From the sequence record KJ019152.1: DNA of 64,000 nt, one strand, 5' to 3'. Under the pieces are notes generated by a model that worked only from the letters and a program-made list of their open reading frames with translations, was not told where the DNA came from and ran no database searches. The first letter of the stretch is position 1. The number at the start of each line of letters is the position of its first letter. This document shows, in pieces, positions 4,490 to 18,439 of the stretch. The position numbers and the translations under genes are program-made.

Positions 4490-4497
4490 TGTATAAT
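4469..4497 (+). promoter_or_regulatory. sigma70-type (early) promoter
   Basis: TTGGCA-17 nt-TATAAT. Confidence 0.75.
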
Positions 4498-4498
4498 G

Positions 4499-4575
4499 GT
4501 TATGTTGGGAAGAAACCCCAACCTCCTTTGTGATGTGGTGTTTGTTGGGGAAGGGGTGGTTCCCTTCCCTTTTTT
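4499..4575 (+). ncRNA. candidate small RNA or attenuator leader upstream of mazG
   Basis: Follows the promoter. It has a hairpin GTTGGG/CCCAAC and ends in an 8-bp GGGAAGGG/CCCTTCCC stem plus T6. Confidence 0.5.
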
Positions 4576-4599
4576 ATTGTTTATTGGTATTCAATTATT

Positions 4600-5004
4600 A
4601 TGAGCGTAGATTTTTCTAAGTACGGTGAGTTTGTAGACACAGTAACTAGTGCCCCCTCCAAGGGAACTGGTGAGATGATCGCAGTACTCAAGGACCTTAA
4701 GCTTCGTGGAGCACAACCCGAAAGACTTCTTACTGGTGCAGTTGGTATCTGTGCTGAGGGTGGTGAGTTCATGGAAGTGGTCAAGAAGATGGTATTCCAA
4801 GGCAAACCCTATGACCAAGATAATGTCTGGCATATGAAGCGTGAGTTGGGTGATATTATGTTCTATGTACAAACAGCGTGTATCGCTCTAGGTACCTCTG
4901 TTGATGAGATTGTAGAGATGAATGTGGAGAAACTAGAAGCACGATATCCAGGTGGTCAATTTAGTGTAGAGAATAGTGAGAACCGAGTAGAGGGTGACTT
5001 ATGA
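4600..5004 (+). CDS. mazG: MazG-family nucleoside triphosphate pyrophosphohydrolase
   Basis: EGGEFMEVVKK and ELGDIMFY motifs, plus NVEKLEARYP. Confidence 0.92.
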   Translation: MSVDFSKYGEFVDTVTSAPSKGTGEMIAVLKDLKLRGAQPERLLTGAVGICAEGGEFMEVVKKMVFQGKPYDQDNVWHMKRELGDIMFYVQTACIALGTSVDEIVEMNVEKLEARYPGGQFSVENSENRVEGDL

Positions 5005-5123
5005 TTGCATCTGATACACATAATGAACCCACTGAGTTAATCAGACAAATCAATGAGTCAGTGGAACGCGCTAGATTGAAGGCACAGGACGACGAACTAA
5101 ACTATGAAACAGGAGGTAAATGA
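5001..5123 (+). CDS. small hypothetical protein (40 aa)
   Basis: Hand-read ORF with ATGA overlaps to both neighbours. Confidence 0.55.
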   Translation: MIASDTHNEPTELIRQINESVERARLKAQDDELNYETGGK

Positions 5124-5428
5124 TGGACAAACCAATTACAGTTGAGGAATACCAAGAGGCTGGTAAAGAGTTCTGGCCAAAGTATTGGTATGTTGCTAAA
5201 GAACTTGGTGAAAACGCTAAGACTGAAGATGTCCTACATGTTATGGAGTCTCTTGCTGGTGTTGTTATGGTCAACAGAAGCAATGAAAAGAAAGAATACT
5301 CTGGTATGATTGGGTTCAATAAGTCCCTAGAAGACAACCCATTGGCTTCTGCTACATACCACGGACAACCAGTTACAGAGTGTCCCCCAGGGACTATCTA
5401 CTGTAACGGTGAATGTTGTGATCTATGA
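5120..5428 (+). CDS. conserved cyanophage hypothetical protein
   Basis: 102-aa ORF with AGGAGG ribosome-binding site. Confidence 0.75.
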   Translation: MMDKPITVEEYQEAGKEFWPKYWYVAKELGENAKTEDVLHVMESLAGVVMVNRSNEKKEYSGMIGFNKSLEDNPLASATYHGQPVTECPPGTIYCNGECCDL

Positions 5429-5436
5429 GGTAAATT

Positions 5437-5571
5437 ATGGCTAAAAGAACCTATACTACAAAGTCTGGAGATGTGTTTGAGTGGGAAGAGACCCCTGAAA
5501 CTACTGCAGCACTCAAAGCTCTCCACAGACAAGTGGCAGAGACAAAACAGAAGCTTGACAGCACCAAGTGA
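5437..5571 (+). CDS. small hypothetical protein (44 aa)
   Basis: Hand-read ORF MAKRTYTTKSGDVFEWEET..., with GAGG ribosome-binding site. Confidence 0.6.
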   Translation: MAKRTYTTKSGDVFEWEETPETTAALKALHRQVAETKQKLDSTK

Positions 5572-5583
5572 GTCTGTTATAAT
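5555..5583 (+). promoter_or_regulatory. consensus sigma70 promoter for the ncRNA/tRNA cluster
   Basis: Perfect TTGACA-17 nt-TATAAT. Confidence 0.9.
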
Positions 5584-5588
5584 ATGAG

Positions 5589-5659
5589 AGTTGGGAAGGA
5601 AACCCCCCAACTGCGGTGACCCCCTTGGTAGTTCAGGGTTAGCGGCGATAGGAACTACC
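5589..5659 (+). ncRNA. unnamed structured RNA 5' of tRNA-Arg
   Basis: Stems AGTTGGG/CCCAACT and GGTAGTTC/GAACTACC; possible pseudoknot ACCC/GGGT. Confidence 0.55.
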
Positions 5660-5663
5660 ACAA

Positions 5664-5737
5664 GGGTCAGTAGCTCAGATGGATAGAGCAATTCACTTCT
5701 AATGAATTGGTCGGGGGTTCGAGTCCCTCCTGACCCG
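5664..5737 (+). tRNA. tRNA-Arg(TCT)
   Basis: Cloverleaf with acceptor GGGTCAG/CTGACCC, anticodon arm ATTCA-CTTCTAA-TGAAT and T loop GTTCGAG. No encoded CCA. Confidence 0.95.
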
Positions 5738-5758
5738 TTGGGGTCTAATTAACCCCAT

Positions 5759-5948
5759 AGGATGTGACAGAATGAACCGTTTGGTTAATACCGGTCATTG
5801 TATAGTAGGGAAGGCTGTGGTGGCCGCCAGAAAGACTAGGAGACTAGAGTTCTGAGAACCCATACCAGGGTCCCGAAAGTTCAGAGGTATTACTATTCTT
5901 AGTATGACCCCTCTGTTGGAGGTAAAAAGATAATCCTCCCATCCACCC
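5759..5948 (+). ncRNA. large structured RNA, probably the manA RNA motif class
   Basis: Non-coding and lies between two tRNAs. Stems include GGATG/CATCC (closing), AATGA-ACCG/CGG-TCATT, CTAG-GAGA-CTAG, CAGAGG/CCTCTG and GGAGG/CCTCC, with a possible GGTGG/CCACC pseudoknot. The manA name is from recollection, not a search. Confidence 0.6.
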
Positions 5949-5950
5949 AA

Positions 5951-6022
5951 TCCACAATAGCTCAGCGGTAGAGTCGGCGACTGTTAATCGCCTTGTCCCT
6001 GGTTCGAATCCAGGTTGTGGAG
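5951..6022 (+). tRNA. tRNA-Asn(GTT)
   Basis: Acceptor TCCACAA/TTGTGGA, anticodon arm GGCGA-CTGTTAA-TCGCC and T loop GTTCGAA. Confidence 0.95.
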
Positions 6023-6040
6023 TTCTTTATTATCTTTGAT

Positions 6041-6757
6041 ATGGATGTATCCAATCCTGATAACTGGTATATTGGTAGATTTTGTGAATCTAACTTCCTA
6101 GATCAAACAGCACTCTCCTCAGTGAGGTCATGGATTGATACTCAATCATGGGTAGATGGAGTTTTAACTTTGGACTACTCTAAAGATAAGGATCCATATC
6201 AACTGAAAAGAAATCAGGCAACGAGAAATATAATCCCACCCAGACTATTTTGGCCACATGTTGATAAGAACGAAAAGTTCGCTCGGTTCACCTGTCCCCG
6301 ATCAAGTACCGATCCAAACTGCACAAAAACATCTAAGGGTGAATACTACAAACCACACTTTGATGATGTAGTTAATGGGCACTTCTCAACTACGATCTTT
6401 ATCAGTGATCCTGATGAATATGATGGTGGTGAGTTAGTTCTGTATATTGACGGGAAGGAAGTATTCTTCAAACCAAAAGCAGGTGAAGGTGTAACTTATG
6501 AGACTGGTATTGGTCATAGAGTCAATACAGTCACAAGGGGTGAGAGATTGGCATTTGTATTCTGGACAGATTGTCGATGGGATGATATTGATGATTATCG
6601 TGATTGGCGTTATTATAACTATATGAAAGACTACCTAATGACAACTCCTTATGTTGATACCTTATATGAGTTTTGTAACGAACCCCATACTATATTCAAA
6701 GGGAAATCATATGATATTATGAGAAAGGTTATGAGGAAAGTTATTCCTAATGGTTGA
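6041..6757 (+). CDS. PKHD-type 2OG-Fe(II) hydroxylase
   Basis: YKPHFD, FISDPDEYDGGEL and HRVNTVTRGER. Start moved to ATG 6041 because the track start lies inside the tRNA. Confidence 0.88.
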   Translation: MDVSNPDNWYIGRFCESNFLDQTALSSVRSWIDTQSWVDGVLTLDYSKDKDPYQLKRNQATRNIIPPRLFWPHVDKNEKFARFTCPRSSTDPNCTKTSKGEYYKPHFDDVVNGHFSTTIFISDPDEYDGGELVLYIDGKEVFFKPKAGEGVTYETGIGHRVNTVTRGERLAFVFWTDCRWDDIDDYRDWRYYNYMKDYLMTTPYVDTLYEFCNEPHTIFKGKSYDIMRKVMRKVIPNG

Positions 6758-7283
6758 ATCATTTTACGGAGAAATACTCAACTCGGATGCTACTGGGCAT
6801 CTGTATTCGTATGCCCAAAGTATTCAAGACTGGCAAACCATAAAGCAAGACTATATGGGTAAGAACTATCAGTCTGTTATGGCTCATAAAGTTCCAAAGG
6901 GAAATGAAATTGAGAAGTATGTTGTTAGAACTTTCCTCACATTCAATAAGTTATATTTCAATTACGATCTAGTAGGAACATTTGAAACACAGATTCTAAA
7001 GTATAATGTTCATGATGGATATGATTGGCATTGTGACTATGGTGTGAGTGAGAATCCCAATGCGATAAGAAAACTGAGTATGATTATTCAACTCAGTGAT
7101 ATGTGGGACTACAACGGTGCAAATGTATTCCTAAGGGACTGGCACAACCGAGAACACATCCTAAGTAAGGAATCTGGGTATGTTACCGTATTCGACTCTA
7201 GGTCCCCTCACAGGGTATCTCCCCTAGCTATCGGAGAACGATACTCACTGGTAGCCTGGGCTCACGGTCCAGAGTGGAGATAA
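6750..7283 (+). CDS. 2OG-Fe(II) oxygenase
   Basis: YDWHCD, RKLSMIIQLSD and HRVSPL..GERYSLVAW. Confidence 0.88.
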   Translation: MVESFYGEILNSDATGHLYSYAQSIQDWQTIKQDYMGKNYQSVMAHKVPKGNEIEKYVVRTFLTFNKLYFNYDLVGTFETQILKYNVHDGYDWHCDYGVSENPNAIRKLSMIIQLSDMWDYNGANVFLRDWHNREHILSKESGYVTVFDSRSPHRVSPLAIGERYSLVAWAHGPEWR

Positions 7284-7308
7284 ATAAAATACAAAGAAAT
7301 GGAAACAT

Positions 7309-7623
7309 ATGCTTTCTACACAATATCGTCTTCGCCTTGAGGCTATCTGCCGAAAGATTGCGAATAGTGAATCTGTGGATTTGAGTGACATGATCTGGGC
7401 AGACAAGTTGGCAAAGAGCCATACTACTGCTAGAGACTGGTTACAGCAGGCAAGAAGACAATCAGCCCATCAAATTGAAGAAGGTACCATAGATGATTTT
7501 ATGAATCGGATGAATTTAGGGAACCCTGATCCATCCGATCATAAAACTGGGTTCGATAGTGCCGATGACATCAAAGATTGGTTTCGGCAAGATAAGTCCA
7601 AAGACTGGAGACAAAGAGACTAA
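7309..7623 (+). CDS. conserved cyanophage hypothetical protein
   Basis: 104-aa ORF MLSTQYRLRLEAIC..., preceded by ATAAATA. Confidence 0.8.
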   Translation: MLSTQYRLRLEAICRKIANSESVDLSDMIWADKLAKSHTTARDWLQQARRQSAHQIEEGTIDDFMNRMNLGNPDPSDHKTGFDSADDIKDWFRQDKSKDWRQRD

Positions 7624-7625
7624 CT

Positions 7626-7805
7626 ATGGCTAATAAAAACGACAAAGGCAATCACCCAAGAGAAGAGGGTTGGTTCACCGAAAAGTTGAAGAGAAGACTC
7701 AGGAATGATCTCATACATCCTGAACATCTAGTTCCCATTCTTATTGAAGAGAATGAGGCACTTAGAGCAGAGATTGCAACACTAAAAGCAATGCATAAAT
7801 GGTAA
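7626..7805 (+). CDS. small hypothetical protein (59 aa)
   Basis: Hand-read ORF MANKNDKGNHPREEGWF... that fills the gap between neighbours. Confidence 0.6.
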   Translation: MANKNDKGNHPREEGWFTEKLKRRLRNDLIHPEHLVPILIEENEALRAEIATLKAMHKW

Positions 7806-7806
7806 A

Positions 7807-9108
7807 ATGGCAGCATTAAGTTCCACTTCCCCAGGACAACTAGGTAAGTATGTCATCCCCACAGTCCAGAAACTAAATGATGCGATGAAACGCAGAACTA
7901 GTCTTGGTAGGGGGAGTGGTAAGTCTTATACCATTAAGAATACCCCTGCGAATGTGGCAGCTATCAAGGAGTTCTCTCGTATTGGTAGCTCCCCCAAGTC
8001 ACAGAAAGAAGCACTTGCTATTAGTCTGCAGACCACTGATACTAAAGTTCCTACTATTACTATCGGCAGTATTGATAAACCTAATATCAAATACAACCTT
8101 GGAGATATGTCTGAGGCTGTAGTTGGTGCTGCTATTGCTGCCAGGTTTATCTACAAGAATAGAAGTATTACGACTTCAAATGTTTATGGTGTTCTATATG
8201 GAATGCCACCATCATCTAACTACCCAGGGAAGAAGGGAAAATATACAGAGAAGACATTCCAGTCAGTTAATGAAAATAAGAAGGTTACAGATCAAGTTAA
8301 GGTGTATATCTCCTTAGCTGAGGTTAATATGGCTGCTGTGATGGATAGATCCAATAAGGATCTTATTCTTCCTTATGTTCGTTCTGCAGTCAGATATGCC
8401 AATAGTACTACTGTTAAGAAGTGGTCCAAACTACTTTATGAGAACAATAGATCAGATAAGATTGATGTAATGTCCGATGGTCTTGGAGGACAAACCACAA
8501 CTAAAGTGGATGTATATGTAAAAGTTAATGATGAGAAAGTAAATATTAATGTGTCACTGAAGGCTGGTGATGTCAAACAGTTTGGTCAGGTCTCTGGTAT
8601 TGAGTTTGAGAAACAAACTAAACTATGGGAAACCTCCTTTGGTTTTGGTAGTGAGATTAAGAGTCTAGAGTCAAAGTATAACCAGTTGATCTCAGATAAA
8701 TCAACAGTCCCACAGGCTGTAACTATGGTGTATCAAGAGGTGGCTAACCTTTTTAATCAAGGTATTAAGAGAGGTGATGCTGGTATGATAAGGAAATTTG
8801 CCAACTCCATTAAGTATTTTGCTACACTAAATGAAGACAATGTAACCCTACTACAGGTGGGTAATGATGCAGCAAAGCTCTATTCGTTTGATGATATATA
8901 CCAAGGAATAGAAAACATGCAACTGAACGCTTCTATTACTATGGGTAAGAGTGGTCTCCCAACCTTACTAATAAACGAGACTGCTAGTGGGCAACCTCTT
9001 ATTCAGTATCGAGTGAAGCAGGAGTTCAAACCCGATGGGTCTCCATACATCAGAAACTATGTGGAGAAGCAGACTGTTCTAGGAAAACTTATTGGTGAAA
9101 ACCTCTAG
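7807..9108 (+). CDS. hypothetical protein, possible PD-(D/E)xK nuclease fold
   Basis: 433 aa. GDMSEA helix, KVDVYV and VSLKAG are spaced like E...D...(S)xK motifs. Confidence 0.55.
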   Translation: MAALSSTSPGQLGKYVIPTVQKLNDAMKRRTSLGRGSGKSYTIKNTPANVAAIKEFSRIGSSPKSQKEALAISLQTTDTKVPTITIGSIDKPNIKYNLGDMSEAVVGAAIAARFIYKNRSITTSNVYGVLYGMPPSSNYPGKKGKYTEKTFQSVNENKKVTDQVKVYISLAEVNMAAVMDRSNKDLILPYVRSAVRYANSTTVKKWSKLLYENNRSDKIDVMSDGLGGQTTTKVDVYVKVNDEKVNINVSLKAGDVKQFGQVSGIEFEKQTKLWETSFGFGSEIKSLESKYNQLISDKSTVPQAVTMVYQEVANLFNQGIKRGDAGMIRKFANSIKYFATLNEDNVTLLQVGNDAAKLYSFDDIYQGIENMQLNASITMGKSGLPTLLINETASGQPLIQYRVKQEFKPDGSPYIRNYVEKQTVLGKLIGENL

Positions 9109-9120
9109 GTGTGTTATAAT
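9092..9120 (+). promoter_or_regulatory. sigma70-type promoter for the methyltransferase operon
   Basis: TTGGTG-17 nt-TATAAT with extended -10 TGTG. Confidence 0.6.
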
Positions 9121-9143
9121 ACCATTGTAGAGATTTCTATTTT

Positions 9144-10043
9144 ATGAAGGAACGCAGAAAGTATCCAACCGTATTGAGGTATCCAGGCGGTAAGTCTAGG
9201 ATTATCTACTATTTGTTTAGGGAAAATATGATCCCTAAGAATGTCAAGGAATACCGTGAGGGTTTCCTAGGTGGGGGTTCTTGTGCTCTTGCGTTCTCTG
9301 TGATGTACCCAAACACCCCAGTTTGGGTCAATGATCTTTACTACAATCTGTATATCTTCTGGACACAACTCCAGAAGAATCCAGATCCACTCATCAATCG
9401 TCTCCTAGAACTAAAGGACGAAGCCTGTGATGCATCGGGTACAGAAGAACTAGAGAAAAAGCATAGAAAACTCTACACAGATATGCGTGATCTCATTAAT
9501 ACTTCTAGTGATCACCTTGATATTGCAACCTCCTTCTACATTCTAAACCGATCTAGTTTCGGTGGATTCACTGAACAAAACAAGAATGCCTTCATCCGAG
9601 ACTCATACAAGAATACTATTTTCTCTCAGAGTAAAATCCGTAAGTTGGCTAATATCTCTGAGATTATCCAACCCTGGAGAATTACCAATACACACTACAA
9701 GGAACTAATGAGAGCTCCTGGTGATGATGTATTTGTGTTCCTAGACCCTCCATATCTAATCAAGGATATGTTGTATGGTAAGGACAAGGAGATGCACACT
9801 GGGTTCTCTCATGAAGAGTTTGTGAGTGAGTGTAAAGGTTCTACACATGACTGGATGATTACCTACAATGAACATGAATGGTTGAGATCCCAGTTCGCTG
9901 ACTATCATATGGAGTCTTTCGAGTTCCGTTATAGTCTCGCCCACAGGGAAGAGAATGGCAACAAGAAAGAAGAACTCCTCATAATGAACTATGAGATTCC
10001 TCGTGATATCCCAAACCCACTAGAGGTAGTTTTGTATGGATGA
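9144..10043 (+). CDS. Dam-like (D12 class) DNA N6-adenine methyltransferase
   Basis: LRYPGGKSR, FLGGGS (motif I) and FLDPPY (motif IV). Confidence 0.92.
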   Translation: MKERRKYPTVLRYPGGKSRIIYYLFRENMIPKNVKEYREGFLGGGSCALAFSVMYPNTPVWVNDLYYNLYIFWTQLQKNPDPLINRLLELKDEACDASGTEELEKKHRKLYTDMRDLINTSSDHLDIATSFYILNRSSFGGFTEQNKNAFIRDSYKNTIFSQSKIRKLANISEIIQPWRITNTHYKELMRAPGDDVFVFLDPPYLIKDMLYGKDKEMHTGFSHEEFVSECKGSTHDWMITYNEHEWLRSQFADYHMESFEFRYSLAHREENGNKKEELLIMNYEIPRDIPNPLEVVLYG

Positions 10044-10491
10044 TCTAGAGCTAGAGTATCATCTTTATCTGGATGGAAACCCTATTCAGACACTGAAGGA
10101 TGACGCTAGTACAATGACTTTAGCCAAGAAGAGAGTTATCGGTCCTTACATTCGTAGAGCTGAATCTTTTATTAAAATATCAGAACCATTTAGGGAACTA
10201 CTTCGTCTTGATGATGGTAAGGATAAACTTCTAGATGCAATAGGTGTTGTCTGGGCACACTACTTTGAACATAAGATTAACAAGAAGTATATGGTTATCC
10301 CTAAGGATGCATCTCTTGATTTTATGGAATACTTTGGTACTATGGCACAGAAGGATAAGTTTCCAGATGATAAATATATTAAGAAAGCTCAGCGTATCAT
10401 TCTCTCTCACGAAAAGAGTATTGATGCTTTCATTAAGGCTTTTCATAGTATCCGTTTAGCCAACGACAAATATCTCTCCCTGAAGAAATGA
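10036..10491 (+). CDS. hypothetical protein
   Basis: 151-aa ORF overlapping both neighbours. Confidence 0.7.
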   Translation: MDDLELEYHLYLDGNPIQTLKDDASTMTLAKKRVIGPYIRRAESFIKISEPFRELLRLDDGKDKLLDAIGVVWAHYFEHKINKKYMVIPKDASLDFMEYFGTMAQKDKFPDDKYIKKAQRIILSHEKSIDAFIKAFHSIRLANDKYLSLKK

Positions 10492-13166
10492 TCACACCGA
10501 AGTCCCTACTATCATTCCTATCTGAAGCCGCTGATTCTGAGGCTGCACAACAGGCTAAGGAGATGGGTTTAACCTCTGCCGGTTATGGTAACTGGAGAGA
10601 CAGGTCGGGCAATGTTGTTGCCAAAACTGTAGATGGTCAGTTGGTGATGATTGACGCCAAGGCAGACCCTATGGCTAGACCGGCGGCACCTGAGGAGGAA
10701 ATGCCACCTGAAGAGGAGGAGGAGCCCCAGTTTGTAGAACCAGATCCAGATATGGTTGAGAAAGTAGCTAAGGGTCTTTCTGGTGGTAGATATAATATTG
10801 CATCAGCACAGAGGAAGAAAGAGTTACTGGCTTCTGCTAGACAGATACTAATCAATAAACAGATCCAAGACGCTCAGATGCAGGCTGACGCTGAGGCTCA
10901 GGCAGCGGCACAGAACCCACCAGAACCCACTCCAGAGGAGTTGGCACAACAACAGGCGGATATGGAACTACAGCAACAGAACGCTGTGATGGATACTGAA
11001 CTGAAGGCACAGAGTGTAGAGAATGGGAAACTGGACCTTCAGATGAAGAAGGACCAGATGAAGCAACAGAAGGAGGCAGAGAAAGAAGCCAAGGCTATGG
11101 ATAAACTAGCCAAGAAAGCAGAGGCACAGAAACAAGCAGAAGCAGAAGCCGCAGCTCCTCCACCAATGCCACAGGGTGTCGCCCCCGATGCACCACCACT
11201 TCCTGAAGAAGAGATGGTTGTACCTGATGAACTGGATGCCCTGCTTGGAGCTATTAGGGGTGGTAATGAGAAGAAGACTAGTTCTGTTCTAGGTAAAATT
11301 CAGAAGAAAATTGGTAAGAAATCTGCTCCAAAGGCAAAAGCAAAACCCAAAAAGACACCTAAAGTTCAGACAGATCGAAGAATACCTGTTGCGGCTGTCG
11401 ATAGAACAGATGTCCCGCAGTTTCAATCTGAAGCCCTAAGTCAGATGAATGCATATCTATCCGAAAATAGACAGAGAGAGGAGGATGATTACTATAGGGG
11501 TGCAGCAATTGAGGCTGTGCGTGAGCAACACGGTGAGGCTTTCTATTACTTTGATGAACCAAATGGTGTTGTAACAGAAATCAACACCCCACAGGGTGCT
11601 GCTGACCTAATGGAGTGGTCAACTAATAGCTCTAACAAACTAATTGGTAAGTCCCTGAAACCTTTTTGGAAAGAAGTTGATAACTTCCATAACAACTGGG
11701 CAGATCCTGAACTCCGTGACGAGAATAACTACGAACAAATCATCGAAGTTACTCGCCCAAACCGAGGAAAGATACCTGATTCTGTAGTAGATTCTGAATG
11801 GAAGAAACTAAAGAATGCAGAGAGGAAGCAACTAGCTGAAATGGGTCTAGGTGGTGCTGGTGGTCGTGCTAATATGTTTCTAAAGACCGATAAGGATAGG
11901 GAGAAGAGGGGTAAATCTATCCTTAAGGTGTATCTAGAACAGGGCGGCCGAGATGCCTGGTTGGGTTCTTCTGACACTAACCCTATTAGTTGGAAGGATA
12001 TGACTGTCGATCATGTTCATTCTGAGGGTGATGTTCAGTTCTGGCAAGCCGAATGTGTCAAGAGGGGTATGGATCCTAAGGATTATCAGGCTTTGGCTAA
12101 TGATCCAGAAGTTAACTATGTTATGACTCGTTTTGGATTCAATGGAGCTCAGAAGAGGGACAACTCCATGGATAAACTATACACTGAAATGGAGAAGAAG
12201 TATTACTCTAAAGGTAAGAATGAAGTTGATAGTCTTACTAGAGGTAATGCTGAGAAGAAGATGAGGAAGCAACTTAGGGAACAAGAATATTATGCTCCCC
12301 TAGTTCAGAATCTTAAGGCGGCAGTTCAGTCTGGCAATTTTACCCCAGAAGTTTATAATGAACTATTTGATACTTATAAGAAAGGTAGGTCTGAACTTGA
12401 GACATCTAACGGTCCTAGAACTGATCGTTCTCAGATGATTATGGGACGTAATGAATCTACCGATCCTTGGAGATCTCTTGCTGAAAGATCACTATTTGGT
12501 TATAAGATCTTTGCTGGTGATGGTCTCCGTGCCAAGAAAGGTGGTCAGATTGCTGGTTGGTCTGGTGTCGGTGGAACTACCAGTGGTTCTAATGCGGCTG
12601 ATGGTGAAGCTCCTTCATATCCCTTCGAGGATACTGCTATGGACTTCTACTTCGATCCTATTCGGAGAATGGCACTATCCAGTCCAGAGAATCAAAAAAA
12701 GGCAGATTCTATCCACAAATACACTCAGTTTATGGGTAACGCCTTTGTTACTGGTAAGATTGGATCTCAAGAATGGCACAACTATCTAACCCAGTCTTCA
12801 CAGATGATGCATGAGATGCTTCCTGATGAGTGGAAAGGTGAGTATGAGGCGGAACGGGGACAGGAATACCTATCAACAATTAATAGAACTCTAAACAAAC
12901 TCAATAAGGGTCAGGATGATCTTGAGGGTGATAATTATGCGCCCGATCGTAATATCACTGAACTTTTTAAGAACTCACCACAGAAGAGTTTAGCTGATCA
13001 GGGTATTGAAATTATGAGATCTATGATGGATCCAGAGAACTTCAATGCGGTTGACTACTATGATCGTGGTAATCTTTATGAAGGTTTCGAAAATCTTGGG
13101 TTGTTATCTGGTAGAGGTGATGTTATAATGGAGAGGTTCCAAAATAAGAGAAGGAATGAAATTTGA
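10488..13166 (+). CDS. 892-aa protein with capsid-targeting-like N-terminus and central HNH-like domain
   Basis: N-terminal SFLSEA module and Pro/Glu/Ala-rich linker. HNH-like segment YLEQGGRDAWLG...TVDHV...NYVMTRFGFNGAQKRDN at about 11920-12170. Confidence 0.65.
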   Translation: MITPKSLLSFLSEAADSEAAQQAKEMGLTSAGYGNWRDRSGNVVAKTVDGQLVMIDAKADPMARPAAPEEEMPPEEEEEPQFVEPDPDMVEKVAKGLSGGRYNIASAQRKKELLASARQILINKQIQDAQMQADAEAQAAAQNPPEPTPEELAQQQADMELQQQNAVMDTELKAQSVENGKLDLQMKKDQMKQQKEAEKEAKAMDKLAKKAEAQKQAEAEAAAPPPMPQGVAPDAPPLPEEEMVVPDELDALLGAIRGGNEKKTSSVLGKIQKKIGKKSAPKAKAKPKKTPKVQTDRRIPVAAVDRTDVPQFQSEALSQMNAYLSENRQREEDDYYRGAAIEAVREQHGEAFYYFDEPNGVVTEINTPQGAADLMEWSTNSSNKLIGKSLKPFWKEVDNFHNNWADPELRDENNYEQIIEVTRPNRGKIPDSVVDSEWKKLKNAERKQLAEMGLGGAGGRANMFLKTDKDREKRGKSILKVYLEQGGRDAWLGSSDTNPISWKDMTVDHVHSEGDVQFWQAECVKRGMDPKDYQALANDPEVNYVMTRFGFNGAQKRDNSMDKLYTEMEKKYYSKGKNEVDSLTRGNAEKKMRKQLREQEYYAPLVQNLKAAVQSGNFTPEVYNELFDTYKKGRSELETSNGPRTDRSQMIMGRNESTDPWRSLAERSLFGYKIFAGDGLRAKKGGQIAGWSGVGGTTSGSNAADGEAPSYPFEDTAMDFYFDPIRRMALSSPENQKKADSIHKYTQFMGNAFVTGKIGSQEWHNYLTQSSQMMHEMLPDEWKGEYEAERGQEYLSTINRTLNKLNKGQDDLEGDNYAPDRNITELFKNSPQKSLADQGIEIMRSMMDPENFNAVDYYDRGNLYEGFENLGLLSGRGDVIMERFQNKRRNEI

Positions 13167-14061
13167 TGTTGTTATTGGCAACCCCCCATATCAGAATCCT
13201 GATGGTGTAAAGAACAAGAAGATCTGGTTATCTTTCTTTGATCTTGGTGTCTCCCTCCTAAAGAAGGGTGGCACTATGTGTTACATCACGCCCACCACTC
13301 ACTTCTGGAGTTTGGGTAGAAAGTGGCAAACTGGTGTGTCTGCTGATATTCTACTGAAACAGAACAACCTTCGTAGTGTAGATTTCACTACATCCAAACA
13401 CTTCCCACAGGTTGGTGACTATATTTGTAACTATGTTCTACGCAAAGAACCTCCCAGTGGTATGGTAGATGTTATTGAGAAAGATGGGACAGAGGTTCTA
13501 CGCCCACATGATGATGTCTATGATTGTGATGAGGAGAGACAAAAGGCAAAGTTCTTCTCTGCTATGAGAGAACTACGAGAGAAGTATGGGAAGTATCATA
13601 TTCCCCACGACACAAGAGATAAGAGTCATTATAGTCAGACACAGGAGGGCGTGTATCAGCATCCTACTTATATTTCGGCAGCAAAACAGATATGGTATGC
13701 TGACAGTCCTACACTAGGGACTGATACACTGAAGATTATTATGAATATGTCTTCCTACTTCTGGAATATCAATGATACTCAGAAGTATATGAGGATTGAT
13801 TCAGGTCCTGGTGTTGGGTTATTGGGAAGAATGTTGGCAATTGATAGTGTGAAGGATGGTGAGAAGATAGTTGAGTACCTAACTTCACCACTAGTGAAGT
13901 TCTACATTGACTGTATGAAGAGGACATCCCCATGGAACCACGCGATGTATCAGTTACCAAAGTGTCACCATATGACAGAGAGTGAGATCCTAGATGAGAT
14001 GGGTTGGACTAGAGACCAGTTTGAAGAAATGTATCCAGAACGTCTGGAAACCAAAGTATAG
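13156..14061 (+). CDS. Eco57I/TaqI-like N6-adenine methyltransferase domain protein
   Basis: FDVVIGNPPY at the N-terminus, then LLKKGGTMCYITP. No clear upstream motif I. Confidence 0.8.
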   Translation: MKFDVVIGNPPYQNPDGVKNKKIWLSFFDLGVSLLKKGGTMCYITPTTHFWSLGRKWQTGVSADILLKQNNLRSVDFTTSKHFPQVGDYICNYVLRKEPPSGMVDVIEKDGTEVLRPHDDVYDCDEERQKAKFFSAMRELREKYGKYHIPHDTRDKSHYSQTQEGVYQHPTYISAAKQIWYADSPTLGTDTLKIIMNMSSYFWNINDTQKYMRIDSGPGVGLLGRMLAIDSVKDGEKIVEYLTSPLVKFYIDCMKRTSPWNHAMYQLPKCHHMTESEILDEMGWTRDQFEEMYPERLETKV

Positions 14062-14090
14062 TTGACAAGGGACCCCAGGTGTGTTATACT
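14062..14090 (+). promoter_or_regulatory. sigma70-type promoter
   Basis: TTGACA-17 nt-TATACT. Confidence 0.85.
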
Positions 14091-14115: not shown

Positions 14116-14997
14116 ATGGTGAAACCCCTGTTTAAGTGGACTGGTGGAAAGGGGCGACTATTCCAGAAGTATCAAGATCTAAACTTCTTCCCAGAGGCAG
14201 ACAGGTTCGACACATTTGTTGACCTGTTTTTTGGTGCTGGGTCAGTCACCCTTTGGGTTGCGGAGAAGTATCCAGATAAGAAACTCATTATTAATGATAA
14301 GAACACGGAACTTATGGGGTTATATACCCAAATACGTGATAACTGGGGTGAGTTTAGTGAGCACTATAAGAGAGTGTATAACGTATTCCTAGACACCCCA
14401 ATAGAGAAAAGAAAGGCACTCTATAACTGCTATAAGAAAAGATACGCATGGAACTATAAGTGGTTGTCAGAAGCAGAAATTGCGGCAAACCTCCTGGTTA
14501 TGATGAAGATTAACTTCAATGGTATTTGGTTAGCGTATAAGATGTATGGTCGTAGGTATTCTACGGCACCAGGGAAGATTGATTATAAAGAAAGTATCTT
14601 TGGTATGGAGAATGTGGAACAGTTCCGTCAAGTCCTACTACGGGCAACACTCTACAATAGATCCTTTGAGGATGTTCCTATTCCTGATAACTCCTGGGTA
14701 TTTGCTGATCCACCATACAGAGACACCAGAGATATGTATTCCGATACATTCACCGATGAACTTCAGTCTAAACTGGCAAAGTTCATAGTTTCTACAGACG
14801 GACTATACTGTGAGTCTAATAAAGAAACTGGTGATGGTTTCTGGGGAGAACACTTCCCTATGGAGAACATCCACTTCACAGATCACAAATACACTTGTGG
14901 TTATGGGGGATCCATTAACCCAGTCACTGAAGTTCTTATAAAGAACTATGGGAATAATATCCCACAACCAACTACCCTTGATTCCTTTTTTAACTGA
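14116..14997 (+). CDS. second Dam-like DNA adenine methyltransferase
   Basis: KPLFKWTGGKGR, DLFFGAGS and FADPPY. Confidence 0.9.
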   Translation: MVKPLFKWTGGKGRLFQKYQDLNFFPEADRFDTFVDLFFGAGSVTLWVAEKYPDKKLIINDKNTELMGLYTQIRDNWGEFSEHYKRVYNVFLDTPIEKRKALYNCYKKRYAWNYKWLSEAEIAANLLVMMKINFNGIWLAYKMYGRRYSTAPGKIDYKESIFGMENVEQFRQVLLRATLYNRSFEDVPIPDNSWVFADPPYRDTRDMYSDTFTDELQSKLAKFIVSTDGLYCESNKETGDGFWGEHFPMENIHFTDHKYTCGYGGSINPVTEVLIKNYGNNIPQPTTLDSFFN

Positions 14998-14999
14998 TT

Positions 15000-15692
15000 A
15001 TGCAAAAGAAAAACCGTATCTCCCACGAAGAAGAAATTAAACTATGTCGTCAGGCACAACTACAAGATCATACATCCAAGTATGCTATGACTAAAATGGT
15101 TAGTGCTAATATTGGGTTGGTTGAGAAACTCGCTAACAAACTCTACATCAAGAATGATCAATACTCTTTCGATGATCTATACCAGGAGGGTGTATTTGGT
15201 CTTATCAGAGGTGTGAATAAGTTTGATCCTAGTGTTGGTTGTAGGTTCTCCACATATTCATACTACTGGATCTATAGTTATATCATGAGGTACTGTGAGA
15301 ATAACCTAGGTAAGATCCGTATTCCCACTCACCTCCGTGAGAAGATGAGGAAACAGAAAGATAATAAGGTAGAGTTGGACAGACTAAAGTCCAAAGTCCC
15401 GTCAGTAGTATCATTAAATACAATAGTGGGTGAATCACTATCCTTGGATAATGTAGTTACATACACCGAGAATATCTCATTTGATGATGAGATGGAACAT
15501 GTTTTGGTTGTTATGGATGAGGTTTTGGATGAAAGAGAACATCAGGTTCTCTGTAGTAGGTTTGGTATTGGTGGTGAGAAACCTCTATCACAAAGAGAGT
15601 GTGCCAAACTACACAATGTTACCCATGGTGCTATCTATTTGATTGAGAAGAAATCAATCAAGAAAATCAAACACCATATGGGTTATAAATAA
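15000..15692 (+). CDS. sigma70-family (RpoD/SigF-like) RNA polymerase sigma factor
   Basis: Region 2 ANIGLV...DLYQEG.FGLIRGVNKFDPSVGCRFSTYSYYWI and region 4 HTH LDEREHQVLCSRFG...SQRECAKLHNVT. Confidence 0.9.
   Translation: MQKKNRISHEEEIKLCRQAQLQDHTSKYAMTKMVSANIGLVEKLANKLYIKNDQYSFDDLYQEGVFGLIRGVNKFDPSVGCRFSTYSYYWIYSYIMRYCENNLGKIRIPTHLREKMRKQKDNKVELDRLKSKVPSVVSLNTIVGESLSLDNVVTYTENISFDDEMEHVLVVMDEVLDEREHQVLCSRFGIGGEKPLSQRECAKLHNVTHGAIYLIEKKSIKKIKHHMGYK
15684..15691 (+). promoter_or_regulatory. T4-type late promoter
   Basis: TATAAATA. Confidence 0.75.
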
Positions 15693-15708
15693 TACTATAG
15701 TAGATTCT

Positions 15709-16923
15709 ATGGCGATGAGATCGTTTCTAACATTCCTAACCGAAGCCCGTTCTCGTGCATCTAAAAGAGCCAAAGAGTTGGGACTCACTGGCAATGGTCA
15801 CGGTGGATGGGAAGATAACGAAGGTAACCTAGTCGCCATGACGGTGAAGGGTGATCTGGAGTTTGTGAAGGGAAGAGAACCCAAAGAGGAAGAAGAACCC
15901 GATGAAAAGACTTCTGCCCCTGAAGAGGAACCAACATCCAACAAAGCGCCTGGGGTAGATCCAGAGAACACAGATACTCCAAGACAGAAAGAACCAGCGC
16001 CTGTTCCCAAAGATAAGGGTATTCTAACTGTTGCTTTCGGTAGGTTTAACCCTCCTACGATTGGACATGAGAAACTAATCAATACTGTAGCATCATATTC
16101 AGAGAACGGTGATTACATAATCATTCCCTCTAGGAGTGAGGATAAGAAGAAGAACCCTTTAGATATCGACACTAAAGTTAGTATCATGAGGCAGATGTAT
16201 CCAACACACGCCGAGAAGATTGTTAACGATCCACATAATAGAACCATCTTTGATGTTATGCGTAAGGCGCATAATGATGGTTACGCTGGTATTAGGATTG
16301 TTGGTGGTGGAGATAGAGTTAAGGAATATGAGAAGTTAGCCAACGCATATAACGGATCTACCTATCAGTTTGATGAAATTGATGTAGTAAACGCTGGTGA
16401 CAGGGATCCAGATGCGGAAGGTGCGGAAGGTATGTCTGCCTCCAAGATGAGAAAGGCGGCAGCTGATAACGACTTTGCTTCTTTCAGAAAGGGAATGCCA
16501 AAGACCCTCAGTAACGACCAGATGGTTTCCATCTACACTCAGGTTCAGAAGTCTATGGGTGTAACACCTAAGGAAGCTGTCATTGAAAACTGGAAAGTTG
16601 CTCCTAGACTGTATCCACAGGAACTGAGAGAGGCTTATATCCAAAACGAAATCTATAATATTGGTGATACTGTCAGTCATGACACCACTGGTATGGTAGG
16701 TAAGATCGTAAGAAAGGGAACCAATCACCTCATTTGTGTAACAGAAAGTGAGGAAATGTTCAAGACCTGGACACAGGATGTTAGTCCCGCAGATCTAAAA
16801 CCACAACCAGCAATCTCTACTCCAAAGGAGAGGGAAGTTGGAACAGATTCCCTTAGATCTTTCCTTCAGAGGATCACTCCAGGAGAGAAAGAGCAATCCT
16901 TTATAAATAAACATAAGAAATAA
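15709..16923 (+). CDS. cytidylyltransferase-like (HxGH) nucleotidyltransferase
   Basis: FGRFNPPTIGHEKL, KNPL and MSASKMR. The start is set downstream of the late promoter. Confidence 0.85.
   Translation: MAMRSFLTFLTEARSRASKRAKELGLTGNGHGGWEDNEGNLVAMTVKGDLEFVKGREPKEEEEPDEKTSAPEEEPTSNKAPGVDPENTDTPRQKEPAPVPKDKGILTVAFGRFNPPTIGHEKLINTVASYSENGDYIIIPSRSEDKKKNPLDIDTKVSIMRQMYPTHAEKIVNDPHNRTIFDVMRKAHNDGYAGIRIVGGGDRVKEYEKLANAYNGSTYQFDEIDVVNAGDRDPDAEGAEGMSASKMRKAAADNDFASFRKGMPKTLSNDQMVSIYTQVQKSMGVTPKEAVIENWKVAPRLYPQELREAYIQNEIYNIGDTVSHDTTGMVGKIVRKGTNHLICVTESEEMFKTWTQDVSPADLKPQPAISTPKEREVGTDSLRSFLQRITPGEKEQSFINKHKK
16902..16909 (+). promoter_or_regulatory. T4-type late promoter
   Basis: TATAAATA. Confidence 0.7.
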
Positions 16924-16942: not shown

Positions 16943-18439
16943 ATGGATTTCAACGTAACCGAAGCTGTCGAGCTAATCGTATTGTTAGCCGAGACAGAAC
17001 AGCTAACACTACAAGATGCTCTACAGGAGTTCCTATCAGAGACCGAGTTGGACTCTGAAACGGCATCCCATCTAAAGGGTGCCCTCTTTGAGAAATATTC
17101 ACTCAGAGAGATGGCGACTGACGCCGTAACAAACGCTATGATGAAAGTGTTTGTTAGTCGTCCAGTAGTAGAAGAGGAAGTGGAGACTCCTGATGGTAAT
17201 CTCTATTTTGTAGAGGTTGAACTAGAGGAGGAAGTTCTAGAAGGTTATCTAACCCTAGAAGAAATCCAGAATATGAGAGTGGATGCTGATGTTCTATCCG
17301 TCAAGTTAGTTGATGAGGGTGTTCGTGACACTGACGCCGAGAAAGGAACAGAGGAAAGAAAGAAACGCCTTGAGAAGAAGCGTGGAATGAAGTTGGACGA
17401 CCATCCTCAGTATCTGGAAACAGATATGAAGAAGCGTCAGGAGAATAACGAGAAGGCTCGTAAGGATATGGATAAAGTGAAGGGTCAGAAGAACCCCCAC
17501 TTCGAAGAGTATGATATTTCTGAAGGTCGCAAAGAAGGTGAGTCTTCTAAAGATTACGCCGATAGAATGACTAAGAAGTATTCTGGTGGTAAGTCTAAGT
17601 CCTATGATCCCATGAAGGATAAGAACTTCGACCATGACAAGGCAGAAAGAACCCGTGGTTCTATGGAAGAAGGTCTAGATGCCGTAGGTGGCGAAGACGC
17701 TGACATTAATAACGATAATAAGGTTGATAAGACTGATAAGTATCTACACAATCGTCGTAAGGCTATCGGAAAGGCGATGAAGAAGGAATCAGCTTGGGCT
17801 GAGTATCTAAATCGTAGAGGAATCTCTGAGGAAGTATTCTCTGAAGGTGACCTAATCGACGCAGGTCGTAAGAATGAGGGAGAACGAAAGGGAAAAAAGA
17901 TTACCGGGGAGGGTGTTGATAACTCCTCCTCTGTGAAGTTGATGCCCCGTATCGCTGAAGCCGCTATCATCACTGAGAAGTCAGAGAGTAAGTCACAACA
18001 GCGTCTCTTTGGTATGGTAAGAGCAGCTCAGAAGGGTGAGAAACCCGCCTCTGGTAAGGTTGCTGAACTAGCTTCTAAGGTTGGTAAGAAAGACGTTCTA
18101 GACTTCGCTAAGACAAAACACAAGGGTTTGAAAGAGAACTGTTGTGATAAGTGTGGCACTCCTGATTGTACTTGTGATGAGAAGCCCAAGTCTAAGAAAA
18201 AGAAAGCTAAACTAGATGAAGCAGGGATGCCTATTCTAGAGTATTCTAGAAACAACGCTGAAGGTCCTACACCTGAAATGATTGATCCTCCAAAGGATGA
18301 AGAAGGTAAGAAGGGTGTAAAGAACCCTAAAGGTAAGTCTAAGAGACCTGGTGCAGGTGACAGAAGACCTAACGACGGTGGTTCCGAACTACCATTCGAT
18401 ATGGGAACCGTACCCGGTGGTGGCGGTTGTGGTTGCTAA
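16943..18439 (+). CDS. highly charged late hypothetical protein
   Basis: 498 aa, E/K-rich, contains SKSQQRLFGMVRAAQKG. Confidence 0.75.
   Translation: MDFNVTEAVELIVLLAETEQLTLQDALQEFLSETELDSETASHLKGALFEKYSLREMATDAVTNAMMKVFVSRPVVEEEVETPDGNLYFVEVELEEEVLEGYLTLEEIQNMRVDADVLSVKLVDEGVRDTDAEKGTEERKKRLEKKRGMKLDDHPQYLETDMKKRQENNEKARKDMDKVKGQKNPHFEEYDISEGRKEGESSKDYADRMTKKYSGGKSKSYDPMKDKNFDHDKAERTRGSMEEGLDAVGGEDADINNDNKVDKTDKYLHNRRKAIGKAMKKESAWAEYLNRRGISEEVFSEGDLIDAGRKNEGERKGKKITGEGVDNSSSVKLMPRIAEAAIITEKSESKSQQRLFGMVRAAQKGEKPASGKVAELASKVGKKDVLDFAKTKHKGLKENCCDKCGTPDCTCDEKPKSKKKKAKLDEAGMPILEYSRNNAEGPTPEMIDPPKDEEGKKGVKNPKGKSKRPGAGDRRPNDGGSELPFDMGTVPGGGGCGC

Follow-up and report, generated by a model that had tools for sequence, protein, structure and literature searches.

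Gene organization around the 892-residue protein

We analyzed a 64,000-nucleotide stretch of DNA from sequence record KJ019152.1, hereafter the window, in which an open reading frame (ORF) for an 892-residue protein lies in a chain of overlapping genes that includes genes for DNA methyltransferases (MTases). The region matched Synechococcus phage ACG-2014f, a T4-like cyanomyovirus of ~220 kb (Kyanoviridae, Atlauavirus), with 100% identity. The ORF corresponds to the homologue AAJ63_gp190, which was deposited as 'cytitidyltransferase' and belongs to PHROG 3561, a family without an assigned function. The gene is flanked by uvsX and gp41 on one side, and by genes for a sigma factor, a true cytidylyltransferase, and gp61 on the other (Table 1). 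As argued below, the protein may be a nuclease that is carried in the virion and whose body is exchanged among isolates together with a partner gene.

An original prediction, made from the nucleotide letters and their translations, had described the protein as having a capsid-targeting-like head and an HNH domain free of Cys, and its gene as coupled to those of its neighbors. The ORF and the strings quoted in that prediction were present (KSLLSFLSEA at residues 5-14; YLEQGGRDAWLG...MTVDHV...NYVMTRFGFNGAQKRDN at residues 482-558), and the overlapping gene chain held, with overlaps of 8 nucleotides (10036-10043), ATGA (10488-10491), and 11 nucleotides (13156-13166). AGGA precedes the ATG of the 301-residue NPPY gene (13156). 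Pfam placed both of the MTases called Dam-like, at 9144 and 14116, in the D12 class. The supposed NPPY MTase at 13156 was found as a gene with its overlap, but it encodes one half of a split enzyme, starting at motif IV. The HNH region had no CxxC zinc pairs but was not entirely free of Cys, with one non-conserved residue (C521) in an insertion.

Table 1. Positions of genes and protein features at the locus, numbered from the first nucleotide of the window
Feature	Coordinates	Strand	Evidence or remarks
D12-class (Dam-like) DNA MTase	9144..10043	+	Pfam 1e-24; constant in all isolates
151-residue ORF, PHROG 3417	10036..10491	+	constant in all isolates; overlaps both neighbors
892-residue ORF, ATG start	10488..13166	+	100% identical to KJ019152 and NC_026927
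Candidate capsid-targeting leader M1-A14 (…KSLLSFLSE/A), L-x-E end	10488..10529	+	motif [FL]x[SAT]F[LM]xE
Module of ~45 residues after the leader (AKEMGLTSAGYGNWRDRSGNVVAKTVDGQLV), in common with virion-associated cytidylyltransferase	10530..10661	+	BLASTP E = 9e-15
Acidic/Pro-rich and Q/A/K/E-rich low-complexity linker	10662..11384	+	holds recombination breakpoint ~11132-11149
Variable cassette versus type B isolates	11133..13155	+	blastn breakpoints
Variable cassette versus type C	11150-14078	+	thus takes in the half-MTase
Predicted HNH-like domain (Cas9/HNH_4-type), residues ~465-560	11880..12167	+	34-residue helical insertion between strands
D508-H509, putative metal ligand and general base	12009..12014	+	end of strand 1
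N543 … N552	12114..12143	+	two invariant Asn, one preceding strand 2 and one in the next helix
C-terminal mostly helical region with conserved Gly-rich loop (AGWSGVGGTTSGSNA)	12168..13163	+	G756 and N799 invariant
301-residue C-terminal half (motifs IV-VIII and target-recognition part) of split gamma-class N6-adenine DNA MTase	13156..14061	+	travels with A-type cassettes
Second D12-class DNA MTase	14116..14997	+	constant in all isolates; adjoins the big gene in type E and S-N03
Cytidylyltransferase/NMNAT-like enzyme with the same leader and module	15709..16923	+	Pfam CTP_transf_like 2.4e-6

Predicted HNH center and helical body

The original prediction had aligned part of the protein with the zinc-free HNH domain of Cas9. 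We prepared two profiles of this region: A3, of the 121-residue core from 11 sequences with identity down to 19%, and A5, from 7 sequences comprising more canonical alleles and relatives in other phages. In the A3 set there were few invariant positions overall, and D489, H509, P540, N543, and N552 were among them; H509 and both Asn residues were also invariant in the A5 set. Position 508 was Asp or Glu, followed by a constant H509, in 18/18 aligned sequences of the two sets, and the D/E-H, N, and N residues were invariant across alignments A1, A3, and A5. Against the PDB, the best match of A3 was the Cas9 HNH domain 6o56 (E = 0.0057), the next matches being noise (E = 0.4), and A5 gave just two matches below E = 1, both of them Cas9 HNH domains (9vj8, E = 0.0063; 6o56, E = 0.086). 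The alignment of A3 with 6o56 consisted of two colinear stretches pairing D-H and both Asn residues, and A5 aligned with residues 814-880 of 9vj8, that is, with the ~70-residue HNH core. The proposed alignment held in that both profiles ranked Cas9 HNH first in the PDB and paired D-H and both Asn residues just as that prediction had done. Comparison of A3 with A5 by hhalign gave 99.4%.

Among the relatives, the short protein P0016 carried the near-textbook motif E-H-I-K-P-L-S-K-G-G…N…N-K and matched Pfam HNH (E = 0.0036) and HNH_4 (E = 0.03) below threshold, and P0008 matched GmrSD_C (E = 6.5e-4). The Pfam scores of these relatives were under the curated cut-offs (17.9 bits vs 21.4 for HNH and 20 vs 23 for GmrSD_C). 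The motif was kept in all five cassette types of ACG-2014f described below, and the HNH pattern in the 892-residue protein is, judged from this conservation, more than chance.

The AlphaFold model of the region (pLDDT 81) contained a strand with M-T-V-D-H (505-509), a helical insertion of 34 residues, a second strand with Y-V-M-T-R (544-548), and a helix (549-556) with N552. Structure prediction had been suggested as a check on the HNH region, and its outcome was divided: the order strand-insertion-strand-helix in the AlphaFold models agreed with beta-beta-alpha, but Foldseek did not recover a beta-beta-alpha-metal fold, residues 300-892 giving helical-repeat noise only and the 121-residue HNH model nothing in the PDB. 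Taken together, residues ~465-560 very probably form a Cas9-type zinc-free HNH center with D508-H509, N543, and N552. The deposited name of the S-CREM2 homologue would make the protein a Cas9; this identity was rejected, only the ~70-residue HNH core being alignable to Cas9. RuvC, REC, and PAM-interacting domains were not found in the Pfam and PADLOC family searches; CRISPR arrays were not searched for.

For the 892-residue protein as a whole there was no match in scans of Pfam, NCBIfam, and PADLOC. An exhaustive search of 1.84 billion representative proteins returned 12 relatives, so the family is rare; word-indexed protein searches with P0016 and with alignment A3 found nothing. The AlphaFold model of residues 300-892 had a pLDDT of 80.6 and a pTM of 0.70, and its Foldseek matches among viral models (BFVD) were cyanophage proteins only: the 972-residue protein of S-N03 (E = 8.5e-7), a 528-residue 'virion structural protein' of S-CBWM1 (3.6e-5), the 692-residue F5B3S1 (E = 5.7e-5), and another ACG-2014f allele (E = 2e-4). 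Since all these matches came from cyanophages, the modeled helical body seems to be a cyanophage-specific fold. A part of the C-terminal helical region in DNA recognition is speculative. We treated as noise a FlgP/LPP20-like match (E = 0.045) covering residues ~630-700.

N-terminal leader and association with virions

The N-terminus of the protein had been read as a capsid-targeting sequence like that of T4. In T4, the first 10 residues are enough to direct foreign proteins, among them nucleases, into the head, and gp21 cuts them off after Glu (PMC9026906). This reading was well supported, as the leader heads unrelated enzymes and all five of its carriers in phage S-CREM2 were detected in virions by mass spectrometry. 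In the window, the motif [FL]x[SAT]F[LM]xE occurred at the N-termini of the 892-residue protein and the cytidylyltransferase only, and the first ~58 residues of the former matched the latter (window 15643-16920) with a BLASTP E value of 9e-15. The wrong database name 'cytitidyltransferase' is explained by these ~58 residues, which are common to a real cytidylyltransferase; the 892-residue protein itself was rejected as such an enzyme, having no CTP_transf_like match and no likeness to the true enzyme beyond them. Cytidylyltransferases of 178 cyanomyovirus records had the ~45-residue module that follows the leader at their N-termini; the module was also found in kinase-like proteins, and the leader occurred in metagenomic and isolate relatives on a 783-residue kinase-like protein, a 78-residue protein, short cytidylyltransferases, and an S-adenosylmethionine (SAM) lyase. 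It ends in L-S-E13/A14 in the window and in L-T-E, M-A-E, or L-V-E in relatives. S-CREM2 has an annotated prohead protease gene (gp143).

Published proteomes allowed the leader to be compared with virion content. The cytidylyltransferase (15709..16923 in the window), which is the cyanophage core gene product T4-GC190, was detected in S-SM1 virions (Sullivan et al. 2010, PMC3037559), and NMNAT-like proteins and kinases were reported in several other cyanophage virions (PMC10665884). Mass spectrometry of S-CREM2 virions identified 52 proteins, which include ORF6 (SAM hydrolase), ORF12 ('CRISPR-Cas9 nuclease', 28 peptides), ORF13, ORF14 (kinase), and ORF154 (cytidylyltransferase) (PMC10665884). 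The leader motif, which had been defined without S-CREM2 sequences, was then used in a six-frame scan of the whole S-CREM2 genome. Eight matches were obtained, of which five were the N-termini of gp6, gp12, gp13, gp14, and gp154 and three lay in unannotated frames. The leader carriers among the annotated proteins of S-CREM2 were therefore exactly these five, all of them in the virion proteome; by our own hypergeometric estimate, the chance of such a 5/5 outcome is ~6e-4 (52 of ~219 proteins). The gp12 protein, deposited as 'CRISPR-associated endonuclease Cas9/Csn1', was a true homologue of the 892-residue protein, with a head 70% identical to that of P0004 and a body that matched type C of ACG-2014f (E = 2e-60). 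The proteome paper mentions neither leader nor targeting (PMC10665884), and a full-text literature search found, apart from the T4 review, no paper tying capsid-targeting sequences to cyanophage proteins. The identification of the N-terminal leader as a capsid-targeting sequence is strongly supported by these comparisons, and the 892-residue protein is likely to be packaged in the virion.

Eight exact matches to the T4 late-promoter consensus TATAAATA were present in the window, all on the + strand. One (15684-15691) lies 17 nucleotides before the ATG of the cytidylyltransferase gene (15709) and another (16902-16909) ~30 nucleotides before the next gene (16943). The mechanical ORF of the cytidylyltransferase starts at a TTG (15643) within the sigma-factor gene, and the deposited start is the ATG at 15709; the latter, with which the leader stands at the extreme N-terminus, is more likely. 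Directly after this gene, a highly charged protein of 498 residues, 'gp186' (16943-18439), contains LQEFLSE close to the N-terminus, is rich in Cys and Gly at the C-terminal end, and may be another internal head protein.

In related phages, a leader-bearing block of genes for the kinase-like, 78-residue, and HNH proteins was conserved (L016, S-CREM2 3837-13331, minus strand; L022, S-N03; L004:6752-12343), and the leader-bearing SAM lyase lies near this block. Within the kinase-like protein, the ~45-residue module is repeated at residues 195-242.

Exchange of predicted nuclease bodies and their partner genes

The window allele was carried by 19/45 ACG-2014f records; the others matched its first ~180-220 residues only, with ~97% identity. 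In blastn comparisons, DNA identity broke at 11132-11149 of the window and resumed at 13156 against type B and at 14079 against type C. Behind a retained head of ~215 residues, five cassette types, A-E, were distinguished among the isolates: 892 residues and a half-MTase (A), 953 residues with an N6_N4 MTase and two half-MTases (B), 961 residues with a 169-residue protein that has no assigned function (C), 796 residues with two half-MTases (D), and 980 residues followed directly by the Dam gene (E). The closest relative of each body belonged to another phage lineage and stood behind that lineage's own head: a Tara S-CREM2-like contig for A, S-CREM2 gp12 for C, S-CRM01 g51 for D, and the S-N03 972-residue protein (63% identity) for E. 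The comparison showed that isolates, and also phage lineages, trade the predicted nuclease body and the gene of its partner as a single cassette, whereas each lineage keeps its own targeting head. The locus had been interpreted originally as encoding a possible head-packaged nuclease with cognate methylases; our results support this in part, but that interpretation missed the main feature, a cassette with a constant head and a swappable body.

Homologues with enough flanking sequence all preceded a DNA MTase gene, save type C (L003), S-CREM2, in which the Dam gene is four genes away from the HNH homologue, and S-CRM01 g51. The suggestion that HNH and MTase genes should co-occur across genomes was thus largely upheld, but not in these three. 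The next gene downstream was an MTase gene in the window as well as in L002, L004-L009, L012/13, L022, L024, and L025, in differing genomic surroundings, and MTase halves flanked the big gene in L010/11. The kind of MTase differed with the body: A-type bodies were paired with an Eco57I-like half-MTase, a homologous half-MTase gene directly following every A-type homologue, and B-type bodies (B, P0009) and the related P0012 were paired with an N6_N4 MTase.

The 301-residue protein encoded after the window allele covered positions 73-169 of 171 in Pfam Eco57I and 66-348 of 348 in phrog_3689. Because the match begins at motif IV, the protein lacks the SAM-binding motifs X and I-III, and the SAM-binding half was absent from the window. 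It was found as a separate gene of ~122-147 residues with motifs X and I (GEVFTP…LDNxAGxGNFL), which in ACG-2014f is gp051 (NC_026927 35896-36300; L015:4897-5301), 100 kb from the 301-residue gene. In relatives the SAM-binding half was just downstream (L007:5364-6624; L008:2493-3753), the gene order being reversed in most loci; in L010 (71-3677) it was just upstream, and the big gene therefore lies between the two halves. Two catalytic halves that differ from each other are present in types B and D, so that a single SAM-binding half may serve several recognition halves. The C-terminus of the 892-residue protein was considered as the supplier of the missing half and rejected: its model was helical, with no Rossmann-like strands, and a separate small gene was found instead.

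Some further observations were made at these loci. The genes for a 433-residue protein (7807-9108, PHROG 3560), the Dam-like MTase, and the 151-residue protein are constant in all isolates and are chained by overlaps to the variable gene (7807-10491). The 433- and 151-residue proteins had no family or PDB match. An impression of a PD-(D/E)xK nuclease in the 433-residue ORF (7807-9108) and in the 169-residue partner of type C was unsupported by PDB and Pfam searches, and the claim was dropped. In the type C protein (L003:9001-11886), residues 454-528 matched the Pfam Ocr DNA mimic with E = 0.031 and 15 bits, under the cut-off of 25, and the match was treated as noise; if real, it would bear on anti-restriction. 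In a long-read contig of 3.77x coverage (L007:2905-5374), the big gene was broken by a stop or frameshift into a 258-residue head and a 526-residue body, which is probably an assembly error and not a pseudogene. Locus L006 (2-1762) encodes another HNH-like protein, distinct from the first, with a match to PHROG endonuclease VII (E = 2e-6; …ELDHV…N…N-Q-V-K), followed by a complete gamma MTase. This pair lies just upstream of a leader-bearing short cytidylyltransferase gene and the P0005 gene, so that two nuclease-MTase pairs are adjacent.

Proposed function and comparison with known systems

We propose a mechanism in which a T4-style leader of ~14 residues (hydrophobic-x-x-F-L-x-E) and the ~45-residue module would bring the protein into the prohead, the same leader serving the cytidylyltransferase and, in related phages, the kinase-like protein and the SAM lyase. 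A gp21-type prohead protease would then cut after Glu13. Residues ~465-560, as their conservation suggests, would form the zinc-free Cas9-type HNH center, and the protein, ejected with the DNA, would cut the host chromosome and/or the DNA of rival phages in the new cell. The phage DNA itself would be spared if it were marked before packaging by the cassette-linked DNA MTase, here the split gamma-class enzyme whose catalytic and recognition half is encoded at 13156. The predicted nuclease body and its partner are, as described above, exchanged as a cassette, with a logic like that of the polymorphic effector-immunity loci discussed below. We put at about even the chance that the 892-residue protein is, as a whole, such a virion-carried modular effector, an HNH nuclease whose body and DNA-modification partner are swapped as a unit. 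Self-protection by methylation, to which the gene linkage points, falls slightly short of that, and a restriction-like function of the locus is plausible.

Several observations weigh against this interpretation. The window protein had no Pfam HNH match and the matches of its relatives were sub-cut-off, and Foldseek searches of the PDB found no HNH structure with either model, the lowest E values being 3.9 with the domain model and 0.26 with that of residues 300-892. The authors of the S-CREM2 proteome caution that abundant non-structural proteins may co-purify with virions (PMC10665884), and directly upstream of the 892-residue gene there is no full TATAAATA late promoter, but ATAAATA only (7280, 10370). 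The 301-residue protein is half an enzyme, the other half being encoded 100 kb away, and its MTase activity is therefore putative. Types C and E have no cassette-specific MTase and S-CRM01 g51 no adjacent one; type C and S-CREM2 have a small unassigned protein downstream instead. A SAM lyase, leader-bearing and virion-detected in S-CREM2 and leader-bearing in S-N03, would be odd in combination with methylation dependence.

These points bear on four other explanations. The best of them accepts a packaged nuclease effector and takes the nearby MTases as ordinary anti-host-restriction genes in the same hypervariable counter-defense island, self-sparing, if needed, being achieved by an inhibitor protein, compartmentation, or timing. 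Cyanomyoviruses are rich in orphan MTases, and here two Dam-like genes stay the same with every cassette type; the cassettes and homologue without a specific MTase, the small downstream protein of type C and S-CREM2, and the SAM lyase that accompanies C/E-type relatives (virion-detected in S-CREM2, a leader-bearing homologue in S-N03) also fit this explanation. However, an MTase was immediately adjacent in ~13/15 contexts with unrelated surroundings, its kind tracked the nuclease clade (split Eco57I-like with A-type; N6_N4 with B, P0009, and P0012), and the L010 gene sits between two MTase halves; the explanation is unlikely.

Less probable still is that the protein has no catalytic role but belongs to the internal head or ejection proteins, with a part in scaffolding, DNA condensation, or channel formation, and that its HNH-like motif has survived as a structural relic. 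Most of the protein is helical and it contains long stretches of low complexity, it gave no nuclease fold match, and its Foldseek matches, one of which bears the name 'virion structural protein', were confined to cyanophages. Against this, D/E-H, N, and N were the sole invariant core residues across sequences down to 14-19% identity, and their retention at such divergence is hard to explain without catalysis; the fast turnover of cassettes is moreover typical of conflict genes and not of structural parts. Equally improbable is an unpackaged, abundant intracellular nuclease for recombination or host-DNA breakdown that co-purifies with virions and whose shared N-terminus serves regulation or localization. 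The caveat of the proteome authors, the location among the replication and recombination genes uvsX, gp41, and gp61, and the lack of a full late-promoter consensus directly upstream are in its favor, but the 5/5 detection of leader-bearing S-CREM2 proteins, with the motif in no other annotated protein of that phage, the finding of the cytidylyltransferase in several independent virion proteomes, and the T4 precedent for capsid targeting argue otherwise.

That the variable body is a selfish mobile HNH cassette of the homing type, whose mobility and not a benefit to the phage would explain the polymorphism and the split MTases, is the least probable explanation, for although the domain is an HNH, the locus is patchily variable in genomes otherwise ~97% identical, the MTase is split with the big gene between its halves in L010, and T4-like phages are rich in free-standing HNH endonucleases (e.g., S-CREM2 gp177), the variation is by replacement and not presence/absence (45/45 matched ACG-2014f records match at the locus), 5/5 examined loci carry a full-length gene with the same head, the proteins, of 700-980 residues, combine a conserved targeting head with a large body outside the HNH domain, virions of S-CREM2 contain the homologue in abundance (28 peptides), and the split MTase halves also occur contiguously without an intervening gene.

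We return to the virion-carried modular effector. In its widest form, which we put forward tentatively as a possibility weaker than its parts, the leader and the ~45-residue module may constitute a general address-tag system of T4-like cyanophages that loads a changing enzyme arsenal (HNH nuclease, SAM lyase, kinase, and NMNAT-like transferase), and the nuclease locus may be a polymorphic effector-immunity cassette, exchanged among co-occurring genotypes, for virion-delivered restriction of the host genome and/or competing phages. The virion association of the homologue was already known, having been published under a misleading Cas9 name, and T4 capsid targeting is classic. As far as the literature was searched, the shared leader of cyanophages, the constant-head/swappable-body cassette, its MTase linkage, and the split MTase appear to be new. 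The recurrence of metabolic and DNA-acting enzymes in cyanophage virion proteomes would be explained by a shared address tag and, because the tag is readable from sequence, ejected proteins would be predictable in thousands of marine phage genomes. If the proposal is true, the locus would be a bacteriophage counterpart of the packaged restriction enzymes of chloroviruses and a clear case of diversifying cassette exchange in one wild phage population, bearing on the competition of co-existing cyanophage genotypes and on the speed of host-DNA shutdown in globally abundant Synechococcus. Two misleading database names, 'cytitidyltransferase' and 'CRISPR-Cas9 nuclease', are corrected. As tools, the leader could serve to bring cargo into phage heads, and the zinc-free HNH bodies, whose specificities may differ, could be of use as new nucleases.

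The leader resembles those of the T4 capsid-targeted proteins (IPI-III and Alt) in being a short N-terminal peptide common to otherwise unrelated proteins and in ending in hydrophobic-x-Glu, the type of site cut by the gp21 prohead protease, where the cyanophage leader would by its sequence also be cleaved. The pattern is the same, with no demonstrable sequence homology. T4 cargo leaves the head together with the DNA; the genes that encode it show poor conservation and are believed to follow the conflict between host and phage (PMC9026906). Unlike the T4 sequence, the cyanophage leader has an extra conserved module of ~45 residues and a long low-complexity linker behind it, and its cargo here is a predicted nuclease of 600-700 residues, in contrast to the small basic proteins and the ADP-ribosyltransferase carried by T4.

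In chloroviruses, restriction endonucleases are packaged, the MTases encoded next to them are not, and host DNA is degraded within minutes (PMC7019647). Both systems have nuclease (predicted, in the cyanophage) and MTase genes side by side, the nuclease but not the MTase entering the virion, as is probable for the cyanophage, with rapid host-DNA degradation on entry as the proposed role. The chlorovirus enzymes, however, are small classical type II enzymes of proven specificities in viruses of eukaryotic algae, whereas the cyanophage, a tailed phage, has a large predicted HNH protein headed by a candidate targeting sequence, and an MTase that is split or of another kind.

The predicted HNH center shares with the Cas9 HNH domain and Pfam HNH_4 (zinc-free His-Me finger) the order G-(R/K)-D-x-Y…D-H…N-x-V-L-T-R…N-x-x-K without Cys pairs. 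The 892-residue protein is nevertheless not a Cas9: ~70 residues align, neither fold search matched Cas9, and members of the A and B types have a 34-residue helical insertion between the strands.

Polymorphic effector-immunity loci, including those of the phage MuF type, combine a constant delivery head, a variable C-terminal nuclease, and a linked protective gene. The cyanophage locus is similar in that a lineage keeps its head while C-terminal bodies replace one another and bring their downstream partner with them; it differs in that protection, at least in types A, B, and D, would be by DNA modification and not by a binding immunity protein, and in that delivery would be by a phage head and not a secretion system. 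Finally, the Dar proteins of phage P1 (DarB has an MTase domain) are likewise large, non-structural, head-packaged proteins ejected for conflict at the DNA level, and the PHROG 'DarB-like antirestriction' family weakly matched the motif IV region of the 248-residue half-MTase of type B (E = 0.001). Dar shields incoming DNA from host type I restriction, whereas in the cyanophage the packaged protein would be the nuclease and the MTases are leaderless.

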